Position numbers and translations under genes: made by a program
Source of the DNA: Takakia lepidozioides
Taxonomy: Eukaryota > Plantae > Bryophyta
Length of the DNA: 64,000 bases
Reading direction: 5' to 3'
NCBI GenBank assembly: GCA_030704615.1
Contig: CM060734.1
Coordinates: 30,938,001-31,002,000 of the forward strand
Notes under the pieces: model-generated
Told to the model about the DNA's origin: nothing
Databases searched by the model: none
The model's input: the letters and a program-made list of their open reading frames with translations, nothing else
Shown: in pieces, positions 4,859 through 34,828 of the stretch
How the letters are laid out: each line of letters opens with the position of its first letter
How positions within the stretch are numbered: position 1 is the first letter of the stretch

Positions 4859-4906
4859 GTGTGTGTCTCATTTTTTTAATCCAGAGATTGCAAGAGAGAG
4901 TGTAGC

Positions 4907-5893
4907 ATGTCTTCCACAGACACCACAGGCACCATAGGCAGTGGTGATGGCTTTAGGGCTGGTGAGGTTGAATTGCAAAGCTCCAAGACTCCTTGAAAAA
5001 GATCTAGAGATAGAAATTGGAGTGAGACGGAAGTGCGCATCCTGGCTACCACTAAGTGGCAGGAATGGGAGGAGTGGAAGGGTTCTAATGCACGCGGCAA
5101 CATGAATTGCGATAAAGTCAAGTGGGAGAGGATTGTGTTGTCATTGGAGAGACAGGGTGTGCTTGGAAGGGATGCAACAAGTTGCAGCAACAAGTGGCAG
5201 AACCTCTGTAAGCATTTCAAGGATATTCGGGGCCACCAGCTTCATAGCTTAGGTAATGAAGACTACTTCACTATGACCACTGAAGAACGTGGAACTGCAG
5301 GACTCCCAAAATCCTTCTCAAAGGATCTTTTTGAGGACATGTCTTTTCTATCAGAGCGAGCTTGCAATGCTCCAAAGGCGACCTCATCAAGCATGAGGGT
5401 ACCACTGGTACCAAATCAGCAGCATGTAGATATCAACCCAATTGATGATGTCAGTGCTGGCCCTTTAGTAGCCAACAATTTGGGTTCAGCAAGTCTAGCC
5501 TCAGAAAGCCAAGATGAGCCATCTGTTCCTCCTCGGGGTTGACCTCCCATGCCAGGGCGGGAGAGGTACACCAATTCTTCCCCTACCCCATTCAACAACT
5601 CAACCGGCAAGAAAAAGAAGGGTGTTGTGACCACTGATTTCCTCAAGGCCTTGAAGGAGGGAAATGAAGTCCTTTCCAAAAGCATGGCAGAAGATAGAAA
5701 AGAGAGGATGGAGAGATTTGGCAAGACTCTTACCCTTCAAACTGAGATGTTCAACTTTGAGAAGCAAAAGGCCCAAGTGGCATTTGAAGCACAACAGGTA
5801 GCTTCTAGCAATCAAAGCGTCATGGTTTCCCATTTTGGAAAACTGGTTGAGCACTTTGGGAAAATGGTAGAAAAGAAGGATGGTGCAGCTTAA
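4907..5893 (+). pseudogene. Myb/SANT-like (trihelix-type) DNA-binding protein, the Harbinger accessory ORF, with two in-frame stops
   Basis: One frame from ATG 4907: RNWSETEVRIL...KVKWERIVLSLERQGVLGRDATSCSNKWQNLCKHFK. TGA at about 4994 and 5540. Coiled-coil-like C-terminus. Confidence 0.8.
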
Positions 5894-9803: not shown

Positions 9804-10538
9804 ATGGCTGGGGGAAATGAGGACGTAATTGAGGGGCATGTCTCTTCTCTTAGCCTGTGCACACAAGGGGACAAGATTTATGTTTCTCAAGGAACTCAGA
9901 CTGATTGGAGTGGAGAGCAGTTGGACGAGTTGATTGCATACTGGGAGTCAGGCATTAGCAATAGACAACAAACTGCTGTAGTTGGCATTGCGGGCCTCAA
10001 TATTGCTTTGGACAGTCAAAACTCTATTGGAGCGAGCAGTTCTGCAACTGTAGGTGAAATACCAAAGTAGGTGGAAGCTAGGCTTGGAACATAGCCAAAG
10101 ACAGCCCCGGGGACCAAGGTGTTCAGCCACAAGGCCGTGGTGTACTGGAGCAAAGGAGCAGGAGCTACACAAGCTTTTGCAATCAGACATGGTTGCAGCT
10201 GGACACGCTCTGCACAAGGCAACCACGAGCGGGGGTTCATTAGCCATGACAAGTTTGTTCTGCTTGAAGGAGATGCAGTCATTCGCAACGAAGACACCCG
10301 CAACCGTCTCAAAGCTTTCGAGTTGAGAGACTGTCAGACCCTACCTTTATTTTCTTTAGTATTCAGTGAGCAGGAGATATGGGAGTATTGTTTTGTCTCT
10401 ACCTGGCAGAAAGATGAGGAGGGTTGGTTAGAGCGAGCTACTGTAGCGTGGGATAAGGTTAGTGGCAGGTTTCTGGATATAGATATACCTCCCACACCTT
10501 ACCATCATGCAGAGCGAGGCACTTTGAGAGAAGTCTAG
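9804..10538 (+). pseudogene. Unknown about 245-codon ORF upstream of the PBS (two in-frame TAG)
   Basis: ORFs 9804-10070 and 10119-10538 share a frame and are separated only by two TAG codons. The composition is protein-like. Confidence 0.45.
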
Positions 10539-11082
10539 CAGTTGATAGCATAGATCAGAATTAGATCTTGCTTGGTCGGACCTCTATTCTTCCCCTCCCT
10601 CTCTTTACTATTTTCATTACTTTGTACTTGTAGTTGCCAAAGCCTCTCTTGGTGGAGGCCAGTCAGTCCGGGTTTTTTGGGCTGGGGTATTCTGCAGGAG
10701 CAGCACTGTGGAGGGATTTTGGTGTGGGGGTATTGATGTTTTGGTTTCTTGTGTTTGGATCCCCCCCACACCTACATGCTTGACTGTGCGCCATGTTGGT
10801 TTTGTGTGGGCGCTTGCTTTCATAGGGATTAGGCCGGATTTGATCACCGGTCAATCCTAGAGTATGCTGTCGGTGGTGAGGCTGGAGTGATGACCAGCAA
10901 GACCACCAATGTTTCTTCAATGGTGAGACTGGGTTGATGACCAGCCAACCATAGGAGTTCTTGCGGTGGATGCAGGTGCAGGTGCTCTGAGCCACTGGGA
11001 TATGACTCTTAAATTGCAACAGGTGCCCACCCGTGTCACTATTAAAATTAGTACTAGAGCCTTATAGTGTCACATAGGGGAA

Positions 11083-23512: not shown

Positions 23513-26500
23513 TGGTTAGAAATTAGTGACTCTCTCAACACAGGGCCCACTCGTGAGGTAGCCTCCCTTATAGTGTTAGTCAGTTGGCCATCCAGGTTTC
23601 TAGCCTTTCCCCACCCACCACTGTTTATTACTAGTTAATGCACCCATTCAGATATATAGGCTGCCTTCTAAGGGCTTTGTATTCCGGCTGTAGTGTTCAT
23701 GCTTAGTAAAGCACTCAGGATGTTTTAACATGGTATCGGAGCTTAGGGCAGCCGTGGAAATCGAAGTGTAGAAAGTCATTGTAGAAGACTTCAAGACTTC
23801 AAACGTAGCTCAGTCTGCTCCGTCGCAGATGTGTAGTCTTTTGTAGGCTCCGTCTCATTGACTAGGAAGAGTCAATTCTTATTTCTTCTTCTCACTAATC
23901 GTTGTCTCCGGTACTAACATCATCTCTGAAGATGTCGATGCCACTAGATACAGTCCAACACATCAATATCTCGGAGTCCAATAAACTTGTTGGACAGCAG
24001 AACTGACACATCTGGAAGTTCAAACTGAGAACCATGATGCTTAGATAGGAACTACTTCTCTTCTTAGACACAGATGTGTCACCTCCAAAGGGACAACGAG
24101 AAGCTCACAACAAGAGAAAAAATAGAGTCGTTTCTATCATTTGTATAAGGTCATTCCTTACATATAAGATATCACCTGTCCTAGGAAGATGTATGTGAAG
24201 CTCTGGGAGCTTTATGAGGTCATGGCCACTTCCAGAAAGCTGATGCTACACAATCGTCTTGTTAACCTCCGCATGGAGGATGGTACGCCTATGGAAGTTT
24301 TCATTGAAACGGTATCTGATCTTGTGAATCAACTTGCAAGATTTGGAGACAAGATGGACGGGGAAATGATGGTGGAAATGGTGCTCAATGCCTTGCCAGA
24401 GAGCTACGAGCATTATGTTCAAGCTGTATTGAGCCAGAGAGATTTGCCGACCTTGGAGGAGGTCACCGCCAAACTCCATTACGAGGAAACTCGAAGAGAG
24501 TTGAGGGAACGTCAACAAAATAAAACTGAAGCTCTCTATGTTGAGTTTCGGAAGATGGATGGTCCTAGCCGTCGTTTTAGAGGTGACAAACGAGACTCTA
24601 GAGCTTCTACCGACAAGAAGCTATGCGCCCAGTCACTGGGCTAAAGACTGTGCTGTTCCATATGATCAGGTTCTAAAACTTCGCTCCCAGCAGATCAACC
24701 TTGTTGAAAATGATAGCGACAGTAACAATAGTGACATATAGTGATGATGTCATTGAAGTACTCGAAGCAGCTTTAGCAGTTATGGAAGTTGGAGAAAAAG
24801 ATGAAGTAAAACTATCAGCAGAGATCACTGATCAACATTAATGGTTTGTCGATTCTGGTGTTACAAAACACGTCACAGGAAATTCTGATCTTGTGTATGA
24901 TGTAGTACCATCCGGAAGCTCACATAATGTGAAATCTGCTGGTGGGCATGCACACAATGTCCTTGGCAAAGGCCATGCCAGAATAAGACTAAATGGTTCA
25001 ATAAAGAAAATATCTGACGTTCTTTACGTACCTGGCATAGACGAAATTTATTTCAGTAGCTGCAATGACTGATAGTGGACATTTAGCAATATTTGAATCC
25101 AGAAGATGTTTATTTATAGATAGGAAAGACCCCACAAAAATCATAGCGCACGGAACTAGAGATAGTCGAAATGGATTATACAAACTAGATACGAGCAAGT
25201 TCCTTGAAAGTCGTAGCATAGACACTAAAAAACAGATAGAAATAAATGCTTGTGACGAGGTTGTACCACAGATAGATTATCCTAAAAAGACTCAACTTTG
25301 GCATCGATGTTTGGGTCATCTAAACTTTAGGGGGCTCCACCAGTTATCTGCTCAGCACGGGCTGCTTACTAGGAAAACATCAACGAAAGAAATTTCCTAA
25401 GGTAGCTCAATATTGAGCTACTGAGATACTCCAACTGCTGCACACGGACTTGTGTGGTCCTATGCAGGCACCATCACTCTCAGGCTCAAGGTACTTTATG
25501 GCCATAACTGATGATTATAGCCGATACACATGGCTGTATTTTTTGAGAAGGAAAGATGAGGCTCTGCAAAGCATCAATATTTTCAAAAACATGATTGAGA
25601 ATGCGATTAGAAAGACGATCAAATGTTTGAGAGCAGATCGTGGTGGTGAATTTATGTCTCATGCTTTCACTAAATATCTCCATGAGCACGGGATCCGTAC
25701 ACGACAGCTCAGTCAACCTCGCACACCTCAGCAAAACGGTGTTTCAGAGCACAAAAATCGCATTCTACTTGAACGAGCAAGGAGTATGGTACTCGAAGCT
25801 GATCTACCAAAGTTTTCTGGTCAGAAGTTGTGAATACAACTGCTTCTCTGATACATCGGTGTCCTTCAAGTGCAAATGCTGGTATGACTCCACACGAGAA
25901 GTTTTCAGGTACCAAACCAGTGACATATCATCTTCGCATTTTTGGCAACAAGTCTTTTGTTCATGTTGATAAACAATACAGAGGTAGGCTGGATCCAAAA
26001 TCCATAGTTTGCATCCTAGTTGGTTATGACATCGAAGCGAAGGCTTACAGATTATTCAATCCTACCACTCGGAAGATCTTTGTTAGTCGGGATGTGACGT
26101 TTATTGAGAAGATCCCTGTTCAAGGAGATGCGCCTGAAGCATAGCGATACTCTGATCCACATCGAATGCATGATGGAGATGATGATTCTTCTGAAGAATC
26201 AATAGTCCAACAAATGGCCACAATACCGAATCCACCGACTGCTCCTGCTATTGACATTCACGTCGATCTTCAGATTAACCCGGAAGATGATGTACACATT
26301 GAAGATGAGCAAGCAGTACCTGCTGAACCAACTCACGAGCAAGTTGTCACTCCTGTGCACACTATTGAACGCAGATCAACAAGAGTTCGTCGAAGGCCAG
26401 CTCTCTAGGACGACTATGTGAATGTGGTTGAAAATGAGGAACCTACAAGCTTTCATGAAGCTTCTCAGGTGGAGGGCTGGTGCGATGCAATGCAGTCAGA

Positions 26501-26669
26501 AATGGACTCAATCTCCAAAAATAAAACTTGGGAATTAGTGGACCTTCCTCCTGGGAAAACTCCAATCACTGCTAAGTGGGTTTACAAAGTCAAGCAAAAA
26601 ATAGATGGGTCACCAGACAAGCTCAAAGCAAGGTTGGTTGCACGTGGCTTCCAACAACGCGTGTTTTGA
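23513..26669 (+). mobile_element. Ty1/copia LTR retrotransposon, decayed and 3'-truncated within RT
   Basis: Short 5' LTR ending TTAACA (23730) and PBS TGGTATCGGAGC (23731-23742). Gag (VLNALPESYE), protease (WFVDSG), GAG-pre-integrase (LWHRCLGH), integrase (TDLCGPM, DDYSRYTW, DRGGEF, PQQNGVSE) and RT start (KWVYKVK..KARLVARGF). Confidence 0.93.
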
Positions 26670-27400
26670 CTGCCTGGTAGCTCAGAATGCTATAAAATCA
26701 GGGTTCTCTGCCCATTTCTGGTAAATCAAACCCCAGCCCTCCTTGGATATTCAACATTACAATTATTCTTTTTTCTGGTTTCTTTTTGCTCCCATTACCT
26801 TGCTCTAGTTTGACCTTGGAGAATGGTTCTAGATGAACAAGTGTCAAGAACCATGACCACTTTTTCTCCTATACAGTGAAGCTTGGCTATTCTTTACTTA
26901 TACCCTGCTTTAACTGCAAATGGGCGAAGAAATGGGTCATGTTCCTGGTCACCCGATATCTTGGAAGCATGTTTGGGCAGACATTTGGAGGAAACATAAG
27001 CCATCCAAAATTTCCGCCTTCCTGTGGAGAATTGCTAATAAAATTATTCGAGTGGGAGCCCGTTATCTCTGATCCTCTTTCTTGTGCCACTTGTAATGCT
27101 AATTGTTCAGATGATATTGAACGTTGTCTTGTTCAATGCTTGCAGCAACAATGTGGGCACGTGCTACTTCGCTCTACAATCTCTAGAACATAGATCTCTA
27201 AAGCTAACAACTTGTTTTGTTTTTGCCCTGTTTGGGAATCTTTGAGATGAGCTATTCTTTGGCATATCTGGAAAATGCGTTGCTCTGTCTACCAAAATTC
27301 TCTTCCCTGTTTGCAGAGGGTGCTTGTCTTAGCTCACTCAGACCTCCTGTCTGAAACAAGAAAATCTTGGACTGTTCTTGTGGCAGCACTTCTCAGGTGT
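26670..27400 (+). mobile_element. L1-type LINE ORF2 C-terminal fragment
   Basis: CATCNANCSDDIERCLVQC (degenerate zf-RVT-like) and ILWHIWKMRC motif. Confidence 0.5.
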
Positions 27401-29801
27401 GGCGAATCCCGGAGCGCCCAACTCCTCGTTTCCTTTGACAATTCGTGGGGAAAAAATGGTATCTTCTGTAGGAGGATATCAGATTCCCGAATTGTGTGGT
27501 ATGAAGAAGTCCCAGCCTGTTGGCAATGCTGTCAACACCAGCCAATCTCCTCTGCAAGATGAAGATGCGGATGTCAGCTGGAGGCATGGGCAGTTGCAGG
27601 GTTGAGTGGACCAAAAATGGCAGATCATGCTCCATGAAAATCAATGACCAAAAAACAAAACATTGATGATACTATACAAAATATTTTTTTAGTGATAGAT
27701 AATGGTATACTGAACATATTTAGTAAAGAGTCATACCCCAAATATTAAAGATATAATTCCTTAAATATTTTAGTCTATTATTTAGATACATTATGAAAAA
27801 GTAAAAATTAGAGTTTACAAAAAAAATTCAATATGCCACCTAGACATTGAAGATTATAGGCTTTTATACTTCTAGAAAAAAAATGACACCCAAAATCCAA
27901 AAAACAAAATGAGTTGTGCACTTTTTAAAAAATGCCTATTTTTTGACATATATTAGTCCATATGAATCAAATGACAAATGATTTTGCCACTTCAAATCCA
28001 TACCTATGATGTGGACCAAAATGGCCACCTTAAGTCTAATTTTTAATGGAATTCACCAATGGCACATAGGAGAACTTGAGTCCATTGTAATTCCATTCAC
28101 TGCGGTACCAGTCCACAATGACGGTGTTCAAAAGTCCACAGGATTCGTGATTGGAGAGTTGCTATGGGTGCATATTGAAGCTAGGAATCCAATGACATAT
28201 ATATTTGCTGGTTTTAATGAGTTAATTCAAATTCAATTGATGACACCATCAATTGCTGTCATCTATAACTGTGCCGGTAACGTCCATTTTGGTCCAGTCA
28301 ACCCTGCATTCACCCACACAAGCATAGTCTAAGGAAGGGCAAACCTAAAGCTCATCTTTCCTTCGAAGCTCCCAAAAGGAAGAGAGGAAGTACTTAGGGA
28401 TAGACATAGTGCTCTATCATCTTCTGTCATCTTCTGTTTGTTCTTTCCTTAGGTTTCCTTCTGCTCCTTTGGATGTGCAACTTGTGGTAGAATTCAAAGG
28501 CCTTAGTCTACAGCTGGCTTAGTGCAGCATTTTAGTGTTTGTTGCTGCTCATATCTTCAGTTGTTTCTATAGTTGTCTTTGATTCCGCCTCCAACTTTTC
28601 TTTCATTTCCTTTTTACTGTTGGCTATGAGTGGAACCTCTTTCCTCTGCCTTCATGGCTTTCTTGCCTTACTTTTAATAAAGTTTCCAGGGCTACAATCC
28701 TAAATTATAGTTTCTAGTTTTCTATAACTTTGGCTACGGCCTGCCATGTCCCCTGTTCAGCCTTCATGGACCTCTTGGCAACGTTATTTTTTCCTTGCGG
28801 ATTCTTAATACATTTTGTGGGCCTCATTCCCCACTTTGCCCAAAATAAAAATAAAAATAACATATATATATACATATATTCTCCTAGGCTCCACATCCAT
28901 CCATGTACATGAACAAAATGCTCGTCTCCTTTGTTCCCGTGAAAATCTCGCAATTAACCCTGCTTGGGGGCCGGGCCGGGCCGGGCAGGCCCGGTGAAAA
29001 AACCTCGTGGTGCCATCTTGGTAGGGCACGTGTAACTTACATCGCGGTGCTAACCTAACAGAAGAGCGGGGTCTCAGTTAGCGCAACGGTGCCATTGTCA
29101 GGCCCGCTCGTGCGCTCAAACGCAGCAACAAACAAGGAGCGCACGACGGATTTACAACAGAGATGGCTGCCCAGGCTGCAGCAGATCGCGCTACTGTGGC
29201 CGGGCTATTGTGGAGGCAAAGCAGAAGAGACTAGGATCTGAGGGGGAAGACGCAGGAATTAGAGCAGCACACAATACCTACTTGGAGGATTTTTTTTGCG
29301 GGGGGGGTGGGGTTGGGAGGGGGAAAGACAGAGAAGAGAGGGGGTGCGGGAGGGAGGTATCCACTCCCTGTTGGCTGCGCCAGATCTGGGGCCTGCTGAA
29401 CTTGCGTTTTCGAGGAAGCGCTCGCTGTTTTGAGCTGTGTGGTGTGGTTGGTGAGAGCCGGCCATGCTATGGCAGAATGTAGTGAGCGGGGTATAAAACT
29501 GTGGAGCAGCGAGTGTGCGTCTGCGTGTCAGAATCCCCGAACTAACCATGACCCCTTCTTCCGTCTTGCGTCGGACTGTCTCCTTTGTGCATTTTAGGGC
29601 TGTTTGCTTGGGCGTGGGATCCGCTTTCAAGTGAGGCAACTGTGGCGAGTGTGGTTAGGGTGGGGGGTGTTTGGGCAGCATTGTTGTGTTATTAGTCTGC
29701 GAATACTTGGAGGACGGCGGTGTATTGCGGAAGCTCTCTTCTGTCGTGCAGGTGTTCAGCTCCTCAGCACTGGCTGGAATAGTAGCATTAGGGGTTAGAC
29801 G

Positions 29802-32800
29802 ATGGCGAAATCGAAGTCTGCAAAGAAAGTTCTGGACTCGTACACTGTGAAAGGCACTCACAAAGTGGTGAAAGGTAAGCGAATCGAAAGTGGTAAAGCG
29901 ATGTTTTGACATCTCATGTGCGTAGATGTGCGAAGTAGTAGGATTACCATAGTTGGCGTGATAGTAACGTGACGTGCGATTCTGGTGAGTGCAGCTGGGG
30001 ACTGTGTCTTGATGCGCGCTCAAGATTCTGACAAGCCTCCTTACGTAGCCAAGATAGAGAAAATAGAGGCAGACAGCAGGGGTAATGTCAAAGTCCGGGT
30101 GCGCTGGTACTATCGACCCGAAGAGTCCATGGGTGGGAGGCGGCAATTTCATGGTGCCAAGGAGTTGTTTCTGTCTGACCACTATGACATACAGAGTGCC
30201 GACACAATAGAGGGAAAATGCGTGGTGCATACCTTCAAGAACTACACAAAGCTGGAGAGTGTCGGCACCGATGACTACTTCTGCCGCTTTGAATACAAGG
30301 CAGCTACTGGCGGATTCACTCCTGATCGCGTTGCCGTGTATGTTATTTGCTTTAACTTCTGTCTCCACTATGCACCATTTAGGCTATAATGGTTTTAGGG
30401 CTTTGCATACCTCCCCTCTAGAGATGCGAGCAACGCAGTTACTTTTGTGGCATTGTGAATCCCGTTCTGGTAAGGGGACTGATCATTTAGTTTGATGAAC
30501 ATGGCTTGGATGTAGATACTGTAAGTGCGAGATGCCATACAACCCTGACGACTTGATGGTTCAGTGCGAGGTCTGCAAGGACTGGTAGGCCCATTCATCC
30601 CTCATTCCTCTCAACCAATTATTTGTGGTCGGACGAATGATGCTGCTTTAAGAAGAGAGGAGCATCTGATGACTTAGCTTTGTCTATTGTCCTCCTGCTT
30701 ACTTGTGTACGTTGTGCTCTAGAAGACTGAAGGTGTGAGCACATATTCCAGTGTCTGCTCCTGTATCAGAAGTTGTAAGAACATGTATTCAGTGATACTT
30801 CAAAACACAATCTCTTTTGGGGGGGTATTGGATTGGGGTATAATAGGTTTGGTTTCTTGAAAGCCAGTTGACAATTCGCAGAAAGCTGGCCGCCATGAAT
30901 TCAGCTATCACAAAATGCAGTGTCAGCATGTCTATTGAGTATATAGTGAGACATGAGCCAAGAGCATCTGTGCTTGGCTAGGAAATTTCTTCTCTTCAAT
31001 CTCAGGGGAGTTTCTGAGTTATTTGTGTGTTCTTCATATCAAACACGGGGCCCTACATTTATGTTGGATCTTTTGAGATACACTGACCTATTTAACGGCA
31101 ACAGGTACAGTTGCAAAGCAGTACTCTTTTGGGGCATATTGTCTATTCATAATAGTGATGGAGGTCACGGAAATAGGGGAGTATTGAACAGCATCTATGT
31201 TGCTCAGTTCGTACTGGTCCTATAATGTGGTACAAATTAGAGCCATTGTCTGGCCTCGTGGTTTGATTTGGCTGGGTGGGAGAGACTTGGAGACCGAACA
31301 TTTGAGAAGTAGTGGTGGTGTGCTGATGGAAGCGAGTGTCTTGAGGCCTCAAAGGTACAGCTAGCTGGGCCAGTGTGAATAATATGGAGGCATGTGCATG
31401 TGGGACATATGGGCATTCAGCTCAAAAGAAGAGCAAAGGCAGTCCCATTATTATAGAAGAGGGAGGGAGCTGATGAGGAGTGGGAATGGTTGGGCAAATG
31501 AATGCAGGTTTCACAGCTACTGTGTGGATTTGAGTACAGAACAGGTAACCAACATGGACAAATACGTCTGTGCAGGCTGTGGGCCTGAGAATCACAAACG
31601 GGGGAATGCAGTTTATAAGACCCCCGACACTAAGGTAATCTATAAGTGTCTAAGGCGCACTAATCGTCTTTACCTTTTCTCTCGGCTGCAGGTTCCACCC
31701 TTCTTGCATGAATTTTACACCAGATCAGGTAAAGAAGATGGAACAGTTAATGTGTCCCAATTGCTCCTCTCAGGTAGGAGACAAGAAGATGCGCCTCTTC
31801 TCTCCTAGAGCCTCGCCTCCTCCTGATCATACCAAGGTATGCCAATGCCTGCTACGCGTGCACTCAAAATGTTACCACCCTCATCACCTCCATGGTAAAC
31901 CAGCTGGTTGTGACGTAGCCCTGCCTCCTTTCACCAACTGGGTGGTATCTGCGATGTGCTCCAGACTTTTTAACTCGAGAAAATCATGCTCCAAATGATA
32001 ATTGTCATTCTGGCCTGGAATTGGCCAAGTGCATGTCTAGATGCATACTTACCCTTCTAACTGGGTTTGCTTAGGTTCCTGTATGTGATCTAACCACAAA
32101 TTTGATGACCATCATAGTGTGAAAGAGTGAAGACAATGTGTCTTTCATATTTTTGTGATGCAATGCTCACACCGCTGCCTCTCAAACCCTGTGTTGATGC
32201 TCAAGATGCATTAGTATGAGAGTCACAGTGTCTTCAAAATTAAGGTTGACTCTACTGGCAGCTGATGGGATGGTTACCATCACCTTTCATGGCAGCTTCT
32301 GTTCAGGCTAGCAAACATCATGGTTGTTCAGTTACGACTATCAGGTACAAGAGAGAAAGAACTGATTAGTTACAGGCATTGGGCGCAGTAAGCCTTGTCG
32401 TTTCGGGAGATACATGTGTCTGCTGCTTGCTTCCTCTGCAAGAGCAGATTGACTTGCCCCTTTGCACTTGCCCTCAAGAGTGCTGTAAACTGGGGCGAGT
32501 GCAGAGGTACATGATATTGGCTTGGCTTATACATGCCATTGGGCGACGTTTTCTGTTTCTGTTCCTTCCTCGAGGTTGGGAGCTGTTACAGCACAGTTGT
32601 TTAGGCGGAGTAGCTATGTGCCTGCACTTCTTTCCCTTCTGTGGTTTGTCTTCATGCTACTGCATGGATGCAGTGTGTCCATCCGTGCCTCTATCTGTGC
32701 TACCCACATGGTTCCTGCATTATGTGAATCTTGTGAGAGGCACCTTTCTTTTGCTTTCTGAGATACCTTTGCAGCTTCTTTGCATGTGTTCCAAGGCTTC

Positions 32801-33150
32801 CTCCCCCAGAGCAACTTGTGTATGTCTGTACCTCATGGACATTGAGGGGTGTAGGAAGAGACCAGCAAGTCTGAGCACACAACTCACACACTAGGACTTC
32901 CAAAGCTCCTGATCGAATACAGTGTAACAGCCTCGTGAAAGACAGTTAATTGCAGCCATCACTTGAACACAGAAATCGCTATCCACAGCACCCACTCCAC
33001 ATTTATTTGCATTACTCCTATTGTAAATCTGTCCAAACATCTCACTGCATGCATGTCTGTCTAATATGTGAACTATGTCATCTATGTAATCTGAGATGCC
33101 TGTGTGTTTTGTGATGCTTGCAGCCTGAACCAAAGCGCCGGAAGAGGTGA
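29802..33150 (+). CDS. EBS: BAH-PHD chromatin reader of the EBS/SHL family
   Basis: Exons 29802-29874, 29995-30337, 30516-30584, then either 31508-31634 or 31692-31836, then 33124-33150 (PEPKRRKR*). Motifs [28 protein letters not shown] and [20 protein letters not shown] versus SHL cannot be resolved. Confidence 0.95.
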
Positions 33151-34828
33151 TGATGTGTTGAGGAAGCTTTATTTATGGGCCTCACAGTGGTTTCACACTT
33201 TTTGGATTATAAAAAAGTGATTGGAAGGAAGAGGGTGTGAGGGTTGGTAAGGGGGTAAGGTGTAGGATAGTGGCCAAGGAGGAAAGAGGCAGTTAAGACA
33301 AAGATTGTGGTCGGAGCTGCTCCTTTGTAGAACCTCATAGCTGGGCACAGAGGAGAGATCTTGGCAGCCTCAGCCTTGTGTAATTGTGTTAAATGTGCCG
33401 TGTGTGGTTCAACTTGTAGCTGCACATGTGCGGAGCTGTCACAGTCACCAGGTGTATATCTCTGTGCCAAGGGCAGTGTATTGTTATCAGGATAAAGTTG
33501 CTGTGTAGTAGTACACTCATTTCAGGTTGTATCTGTCCCTGCTTCTCAGTTCATGTTTGCCAGCATTTGGCAATGAACAATGGAGTCCTGGTCCAGAAAT
33601 GGGACAGAAGCACGGCAGATTTGAGTAGCGACGGGAGTGTTGTTCGGATCATGCTGCTGGAAGAGGGGTTCCATATTGGCAGAACGGGAGTGGAGGCTGC
33701 AAGTTCGATATTGAGTGTAAAGCCTTCTTTCTCAAAATGAGATTTAATCAGTAGGCACTCTGAGAAGGGTTGTACCTAGTTAGCAAGATCTGCTCTTATC
33801 GACCTATATTTGCTTCAGTTCTTCAAACTTCATTGCATAGTTGAACGGTGTTGCTGCTGAGGTTTGAGTTCAGCTACTTCAGATTGTGGCATGCAGAAAC
33901 ATCTCCGCAAAGCAGTTTCAGTTGCAATTAAAGGCAATCCTGTAGGTAACTCCAGGATTCTTTATGTTTTAAAGGTGTTACAACAGGGAACCTGTCAATC
34001 AAACACTAAATGGTAAATGTACCATGACTTTGTTTGAGATTAACATGTTAGTGCAGCTGCCAACTGCATGCATGCCCAACCGTCACAATGCTGAAATGTG
34101 GAAGCTGCTCATGAGATACTACGTATACAAAGTAATCAACCTTTCTCAGTCAAGCCAGTCAGCAGTGGTCATTCACTGCGCCGTATCGTGTACTCAATGG
34201 TATCACAGGACTTGATGAATATGAGAATGTATGGATTAATAGTCCAAAATGGTTTGTGAGAGCATACAGGAATATAACTTGCGTCTATTTGTATGTCAGG
34301 GAAGAAATCTGATACCGGATAGAGCTTCCTTCTAAGCTTCCTTGACTGTGGGGCACTTGTATTGTAAATAGGGAGATAGGGCTCATGCCTACCACTGTAC
34401 CATAGAATGTGCCCCGCATCTGCTTATGCTAGGTAGGGCTCACCACCATATTAGCTGGTGTCGGCACCCATGGTATAATGGATAGTTATCTGATTGGCTG
34501 TACACAATAATAAAAGCCTAACAGGCTACTATGCCCTTGCATAATTAGCTACCGGACAGAGCAGGGTGAAGATTTTGCTTCTTGATCCACCTCGAATTCG
34601 ACAAAGCGTTGTCTTTCAGGGACCCTTCCTTCAAACTCCTTAAGAGTTGTGAAGTAGGCAAATTGGCTTGAGATGGACTGGAGTTCATTTACAATATCCT
34701 TCAAGGCATGCGGGTTATGGAGTTCAGCCAACATGCTGGTAGCCTGTTTTAGGTGTATGCATCCATCCTCTTAAGGAGATAAGAGCTAAGCTGGGAAAGT
34801 GTCACGCCACCATGAAAGAAGTGCCCAG

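Follow-up and report, generated by a model that had tools for sequence, protein, structure and literature searches.

Probable mutually exclusive exons common to mosses and liverworts in an EBS/SHL-type histone reader gene of a bryophyte

Results

An EBS/SHL-type gene with two alternative second halves of its PHD finger

The stretch of DNA analysed here (the window) comprises 64,000 nucleotides (nt) of contig CM060734.1 from the moss-like bryophyte Takakia lepidozioides and harbours a BAH-PHD gene of the EBS/SHL type. The gene runs from 29802 to 33150 on the forward strand and possesses six exons when two homologous ones, exons A and B, are both counted (Table 1). These two had been proposed to be mutually exclusive in a first-pass annotation of the sequence. 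Exon 2 carries the BAH domain (Pfam PF01426) with an E value of 4.3e-25, and it matches EBS/SHL proteins from all land plants, the best protein match being an EBS-like protein of Marchantia polymorpha with 97% identity. The peptide encoded by exon 1 is identical to the exon 1 peptide of a Sphagnum homologue. In EBS and SHL, the BAH domain reads histone H3 trimethylated at lysine 27 (H3K27me3) through an aromatic cage formed by Tyr, Trp and Tyr (PMC6013494). Alignment of the exon 2 translation with EBS, by way of the alignment between the Sphagnum orthologue and the EBS structure 5Z8L, reveals that the PPY and RWYY motifs are retained, and the BAH cage is conserved by motif in the window gene.

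The PHD finger is distributed over exon 3 and the alternative exons. In poplar SHL (PtSHL), the cage of this finger consists of Tyr141, Tyr148 and Trp163 (PMC6013494), and these residues map by motif (YCKC, MPY and KDW) onto exon 3 and its junction codon in the window gene. Exon 3 contains four Cys ligands and both cage Tyr residues, and the codon of the cage Trp begins with its last two bases. Together with either A or B, each contributing a His and three Cys, it yields a complete C4HC3 PHD finger with a Tyr/Tyr/Trp cage. As in Arabidopsis EBS and SHL, the encoded protein has an N-terminal BAH domain, a C-terminal C4HC3 PHD finger with this cage, a basic KRRKR end and high overall identity. 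The Sphagnum orthologue matches EBS with an E value of 1e-100, and the structures of reference are 5Z8L and 5Z8N for EBS and 5ZNP and 5ZNR for poplar SHL. By every feature that can be tested in a sequence, the window gene is assigned to the EBS/SHL family. By a small correction drawn from the RNA joints, exon 3 begins at 30516 and exon 2 spans 29995-30337 (Table 1). The 3' untranslated region (UTR) reaches at least to 34115.

Table 1. Features of the EBS/SHL-type gene in the window (a > b denotes an RNA joint between positions a and b)
Feature	Position	Strand	Evidence or remark
Exon 1, coding part	29802-29874	+	Start codon at 29802; joint 29874 > 29995 in both runs
Exon 2, BAH domain	29995-30337	+	Pfam BAH match and RNA joints
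Exon 3, first PHD half, in both isoforms	30516-30584	+	Sequence and RNA joints
Exon A, second PHD half and short tail	31508-31634 (127 nt)	+	Joints 30584 > 31508 and 31634 > 33124
Intron between A and B	31635-31691 (57 nt)	+	Candidate branch point in CTAAT, 29 nt from the donor
Exon B, EBS/SHL-type second PHD half and proline-rich tail	31692-31836 (145 nt)	+	Joint 30584 > 31692 in run X1
Last coding exon, PEPKRRKR and stop, in both isoforms	33124-33150	+	Reading frame and RNA joints

Anatomy of the exon pair

Exons A and B display the properties of a tandem duplicate: they are adjacent and homologous, of like length and of the same phase, bounded by canonical splice sites, and exclusive by reading frame. 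Each is preceded by CAG and followed by GT, has a G as first base to complete the Trp codon, and ends with AAG. Both lengths leave a remainder of one when divided by three, and the reading frame of each exon continues into the last exon, which begins at 33124. Inclusion of both exons leads to a stop inside B, and omission of both leads to a frameshifted tail. The short intron between them contains a CTAAT whose branch A lies at the distance from the donor given in Table 1 and 28 nt from the acceptor. The structural claims of the first-pass annotation, including the coordinates of the two exons downstream of exon 3, all hold. The two exons are flanked by acceptors of opposite character, a purine-rich and weak tract in front of A versus a strong pyrimidine tract in front of B. 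The donor of B reads GTATGC, the same as in B exons of liverworts.

The peptides of A and B are homologous beyond chance (BLASTP E value of 2e-07 over their first 25 residues), and each of them aligns with the Pfam PHD profile at positions 23-47. Naturally occurring A-type and B-type proteins both score above the Pfam PHD cut-off; the A-type protein P0015, for example, reaches 34.8 bits against a cut-off of 24. Judged by its profile match, the A-type finger is a valid PHD finger.

Both exons are kept in two liverworts and are divided between two genes in peat mosses

Among the 120 best matches to the BAH exon, an A-type second half was found in two Sphagnum proteins only, and the B-type in all others, indicating that B is the canonical version. 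Word searches with the A exons of Sphagnum and of the window returned Sphagnum clusters only, a result that says nothing on expression of A in liverworts because liverwort gene models use B. Neither an A-form nor a B-form protein of the window organism was present in a set of 5.8 billion proteins, and with 97% as the best match of the BAH exon this set does not represent the organism.

Genomic loci of relatives were searched exon by exon, with each exon taken singly. In the liverwort Marchantia paleacea (locus L009), an intact A (10478-10610, 133 nt) is followed by a 48-nt intron and an intact B (10659-10803, 145 nt). The leafy liverwort Calypogeia fissa (locus L012) possesses the same arrangement, with an intact A at 4867-4999 (133 nt), a 48-nt intron and an intact B at 5048-5189 (142 nt). 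Splice borders and phase are identical among the window, M. paleacea and Calypogeia, a CTAAT lies 24-29 nt from the donor in all three, and the 48-nt intron can mostly be aligned between both liverworts. By contrast, only B was found in Ceratodon, in one Sphagnum paralogue (03G061900-type) and in the lycophyte Diphasiastrum, and no relic of A was detected by nhmmer in the B-only genes of these three.

A different situation is encountered in the second Sphagnum paralogue, represented by BDL97_08G058400 of S. fallax and its orthologues. There, exon A is constitutive, as confirmed by a metatranscriptome mRNA (L003), and its acceptor tract is richer in U than that of the window. Directly after A, at the position homologous to that of B, these 08G-type genes contain a decayed B exon (nhmmer E values of 0.002-0.009). 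In the two loci L004 and L005, this relic has suffered a 35-nt deletion and has lost one Cys codon and the donor, while its acceptor-proximal bases and its second half can still be aligned. Peat mosses have split A and B between two genes, that is, by subfunctionalization after gene duplication and not by a choice in splicing. As a separate observation, the Sphagnum A-type mRNA occurs in two forms in peat metatranscriptomes of the Joint Genome Institute: L003 is correctly spliced, and P0124 retains the intron downstream of A, so that it continues into the relic of B.

As for the affinities of the window gene itself, a tree of exon 2 places it with mosses (support 97/78) and outside the sampled Sphagnum and Ceratodon sequences. 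The lowest synonymous distance of its exon 2 is to the B-only Sphagnum paralogue, and the proline-rich tail of its exon B is of the moss type.

Selection on the two exons and age of the duplication

In trees of the exons, the A and B exons are fully separated, with every B exon in a single clade and support values of 99.6/99 for DNA and 100/100 for protein. This separation indicates that the duplication is older than the split of the sampled lineages and that the two copies have evolved without homogenizing each other. Pairwise ratios of nonsynonymous to synonymous change (dN/dS) range from 0.1 to 0.35 for exons A and B alike. The first-pass annotation had asked whether both exons are conserved and under selection in orthologues, and the intact cassettes of the two distant liverworts together with these ratios answer in the affirmative. 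In addition, exon B of the window shares 71-72% identity with its constitutive counterparts in Ceratodon and in the Sphagnum paralogue, with a dN/dS of about 0.2.

We then compared the proportion of synonymous sites that differ (pS) in A and B with that in the BAH exon for the three species that possess both exons (Table 2). Synonymous change was far lower in A and in B than in exon 2. The constraint is gone where A is constitutive, as pS between the A exons of the window and of Sphagnum amounts to 0.78-0.90. Low synonymous change typically marks exons with splicing signals in their RNA.

Table 2. Proportion of differing synonymous sites (pS) in exons A, B and 2; P values are from Fisher's exact test against exon 2 (BAH)
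Comparison	Exon A	Exon B	Exon 2
Window and M. paleacea	0.34 (P 2e-9)	0.61 (P 9e-5)	0.94
Window and Calypogeia	0.55 (P 7e-4)	0.70 (P 0.03)	0.90
M. paleacea and Calypogeia	0.22 (P 1e-7)	0.44 (P 9e-4)	0.81

Read from sequence comparison, these results point to the following: 1) B is the ancestral, canonical version and A is a derived, bryophyte-specific one; and 2) A arose by a tandem exon duplication, at the latest in the ancestor that mosses and liverworts have in common, with fast divergence thereafter. One further feature of the exons may contribute to the synonymous constraint. An internal CAG/GTAA string resembling a strong donor lies at homologous Gln-Val codons of both exons (31542-31549 in A and 31726-31733 in B). 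Among the aligned A exons it is unchanged in those of the window, M. paleacea and Calypogeia, whereas Sphagnum A reads GTGA at this place, and it is present in most B exons. No RNA joint was found at this string among the contigs of the two RNA runs described below.

RNA contigs contain the complete A-form and a joint into exon B

RNA evidence was taken from assembled contigs of the only two public runs that contain the stretch, belonging to two studies, and was compared with the window over 28900-34700. Such contigs establish presence and are no proof of absence, and their depth is unsuited to ranking. They behave as spliced RNA, with the joints 29874 > 29995, 30337 > 30516, 30584 > 31508 and 31634 > 33124 in both runs. 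The two joints that the first-pass annotation predicted for inclusion of A were thus found in two studies. A single contig of 2040 nt comprises exons 1, 2, 3, A and the last exon, which represents the full-length A-form, and exon A is the main form in the sampled RNA. Neither the derived, bryophyte-specific nature of A nor its prevalence in the sampled RNA was foreseen in the first-pass annotation. Of the two joints predicted for inclusion of B, the one from exon 3 to B (30584 > 31692) was seen in one short contig of run X1, and the one from B to the last exon was seen in neither run. Splicing into exon B occurs in the window organism.

We considered whether the contig joining exon 3 to B could stem from a B-only paralogue located elsewhere in the genome, in which case there would be no RNA evidence for B at this locus. 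Its likeness to the window of 90-95%, its mark 'between: not known' and the existence of a B-only paralogue in Sphagnum would agree with such an origin. However, the contig aligns in full, with no part unlike the window, and the depth table shows it to reach roughly 26 nt into exon 3 on one side and roughly 28 nt into exon B on the other. This is the size that would be expected of a junction-bridging piece in a k=31 graph, branching from the paths of the window gene itself, whereas the mRNA contig of a paralogue would be long and extend into unlike sequence. A paralogous origin is accordingly regarded as highly improbable.

Several observations weigh against mutually exclusive use of A and B. 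The joint of B to the last exon (31836 > 33124) is absent from the contigs of both runs, and the inside of B is covered by only one unspliced contig of low depth (31622-31925). The joint from exon 3 to B comes from a single short contig of a single run, with the likeness given above. A joint from A to B (31634 > 31692), which the first-pass annotation expected to be absent, is not among the contig joints of the two runs, and this counts as weak evidence because contigs show presence only. The product containing both exons has its stop 31 nt before the last junction, so that nonsense-mediated decay is not sure to remove it. No liverwort A-form protein was found in the protein database, and use of A in liverworts is deduced from conservation alone. 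RNAalifold, applied to the cassette of A, intron and B in the three species, gave no covariation support and an unfavourable covariation term, and for this reason we do not claim a structure-based mechanism for the synonymous constraint. Finally, a steric block by the short intron between A and B is proposed by analogy only.

These observations could mean that only A is productive in the window organism, B being on its way out and the joint into B being splicing noise that never continues to the last exon. Such a reading accords with the dominance of A, the sole full-length form in the RNA, with the unseen joint downstream of B and the scanty coverage of its inside, and with the loss of B from the A-carrying gene of Sphagnum. 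Against it, B is fully intact, with an open frame, all of its ligands, a strong acceptor and the donor shared with liverworts. It retains the identity and low dN/dS toward the constitutive B of other mosses reported above, and its synonymous sites are constrained. Where B is unused, as in Sphagnum, it has decayed almost beyond recognition, and both exons have been kept in two liverwort lineages. We consider productive use of A alone unlikely.

Alternatively, B might be used without being swapped for A: after the joint from exon 3 to B, the downstream intron could be retained or the transcript could end there, so that the choice would concern alternative 3' ends. The sole contig across the B donor is unspliced and continues to 31925, and the frame stays open for 53 codons past this donor, as such a choice of 3' end would have it. 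Yet the same contig also contains the intron between A and B and is therefore pre-mRNA-like. Moreover, the donor and phase of B are conserved in all species, and the KRRKR exon follows B both in B-only species and in the gene models of liverworts. A choice between 3' ends is very unlikely on this account.

Taken together, the exon pair has the structural and evolutionary attributes of mutually exclusive exons and falls short only in direct RNA evidence for B. Mutually exclusive splicing, as proposed in the first-pass annotation, finds good support in the comparisons, which are the stronger line of evidence and comprise the liverwort cassettes, purifying selection, synonymous constraint and the split in peat mosses. 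The RNA adds the complete chain from exon 3 through A to the last exon and the joint from exon 3 to B; the part of the proposal left unseen is the joint from B to the last exon. We conclude that the EBS/SHL orthologue of this bryophyte probably contains mutually exclusive exons, an ancient pair that mosses and liverworts have in common.

Discussion

A possible mechanism for the choice between A and B

Under mutually exclusive splicing, exons 1-3 would be constant, so that the BAH domain, the first half of the PHD finger and with it the entire methyl-lysine cage are present in either product. Splicing would then take either A or B, followed by the common last exon. Whichever is taken would complete the second zinc site with a His and three Cys and would add the PHD helix and a tail of its own. 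With an intron of 48-57 nt and a branch point 24-29 nt from the donor, the sites between A and B would be too close for U1 and U2 to assemble jointly. Once A is defined, its donor could then pair only with the acceptor of the last exon. The reading frame would add to this exclusivity, as both or neither of the exons breaks it.

The choice itself is probably made at the weak acceptor of A, with B serving as the default when A is left unrecognized. The contrast between a purine-rich, weak tract in front of A and a strong pyrimidine tract in front of B makes recognition of A the likely regulated step. The U-richer tract of A in Sphagnum, where A is constitutive, fits this idea of regulation at the A acceptor.

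Predicted differences between the two isoforms

The PHD finger of poplar SHL contacts R2, K4 and T6 of histone H3 (PMC6013494). By motif, both these contacts and the cage fall in exon 3 and the junction Trp, and they are therefore shared by both isoforms. The isoforms most likely differ, as predicted from their sequences, around the second zinc site, in the PHD helix and in the C-terminal tail. By analogy with PHD fingers in general, the part anchoring the N-terminus of H3 probably also differs between them.

The C-terminal region of Arabidopsis EBS is rich in proline and autoinhibits binding to histone H3 trimethylated at lysine 4 (H3K4me3) (PMC13361950, a review), and EBS and SHL differ mainly in their C-termini (PMC6013494). 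As the tail of exon B is proline-rich as well, a difference between the A-form and the B-form in reading of methylated H3K4 or in autoinhibition can reasonably be suggested. More tentatively, an exon switch older than the split between mosses and liverworts may allow one gene to produce two bivalent readers of H3K27me3 and H3K4me3, which would share the BAH domain and the cage but, differing in helix, autoinhibitory tail and probably the H3 N-terminus anchor, bind methylated H3K4 differently. In terms of splicing, such a switch would correspond to the EBS/SHL gene pair of flowering plants, and it might be placed under tissue or condition control through the weak acceptor of A. We regard this functional scenario as possible, although doubtful at present.

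Comparison with known systems

Exons 2 and 3 of alpha-tropomyosin are a classical example of tandem exons that a short intron and the reading frame keep mutually exclusive. The window pair resembles them in consisting of adjacent homologous exons of like size and phase, in its short distance between donor and branch point, and in a frame that is broken by inclusion of both or neither. It differs in being a plant pair, shared by mosses and liverworts and located in a zinc-finger histone reader, and in that its steric mechanism is suggested by geometry only. Very few well-supported cases of mutually exclusive exons are known from plants, and no published description of the EBS/SHL exon pair was found in the literature.

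In angiosperms, two C-terminal variants of this reader are provided by two genes, EBS and SHL, whereas here one gene appears to provide two by exon choice. Unlike anything in Arabidopsis EBS or SHL, the A-type exon came up, in the searches made, in proteins of Sphagnum and in genomic loci of liverworts and mosses and nowhere else. Within the bryophytes, the A-type BDL97_08G058400 and the B-type BDL97_03G061900 of Sphagnum represent the same two versions, homologous exon by exon to those of the window. Unlike the window gene, each of these paralogues uses one version constitutively, the A-type gene with its B relic and the B-type gene without A. Peat mosses can in this sense be regarded as a natural experiment in which two exon versions were turned into two genes. 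The significance of the pair lies in its position within a reader that links Polycomb chromatin (H3K27me3) to active chromatin (H3K4me3).

Public gene models and a genetic model species

Faulty public gene models can be flagged in three species. In M. polymorpha, model P0001 looks wrong in that both exons are skipped, leaving a frameshifted end. In M. paleacea, model P0003 seems to enter B through a wrong acceptor, giving KDCG in place of KDW. In Sphagnum fallax, model P0029 of the 03G061900 gene appears to read past the B donor into the intron. The skipping of both exons in the public model suggests that the cassette is present in M. polymorpha too. If so, the two isoforms could be removed singly in a genetic model. 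It could then be tested how the tail of the PHD finger tunes bivalent reading, and how exon choice and gene duplication substitute for each other.

Additional observations at the locus

The RNA contigs begin near 29110, which gives an intronless 5' UTR of about 690 nt, an unusual length. At the other end, contig depth climbs beyond about 33900 (33900-34700) and separate contigs take over, and this may reflect either a 3' UTR of great length or a second transcript that adjoins or overlaps the first. Both RNA runs share small differences from the window, namely C to T at 29718, G to A at 30081 and an insertion of CGGT after 33519, with further shared differences at 33590-33641, 34282 and 34307. 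They probably derive from a strain or individual other than that of the assembly. About 2.5 kilobases upstream of the EBS-like gene, at 24189-27200, the list of open reading frames contains broken frames with gag-, integrase- and reverse-transcriptase-like peptides, as in a Copia-type long terminal repeat retrotransposon.

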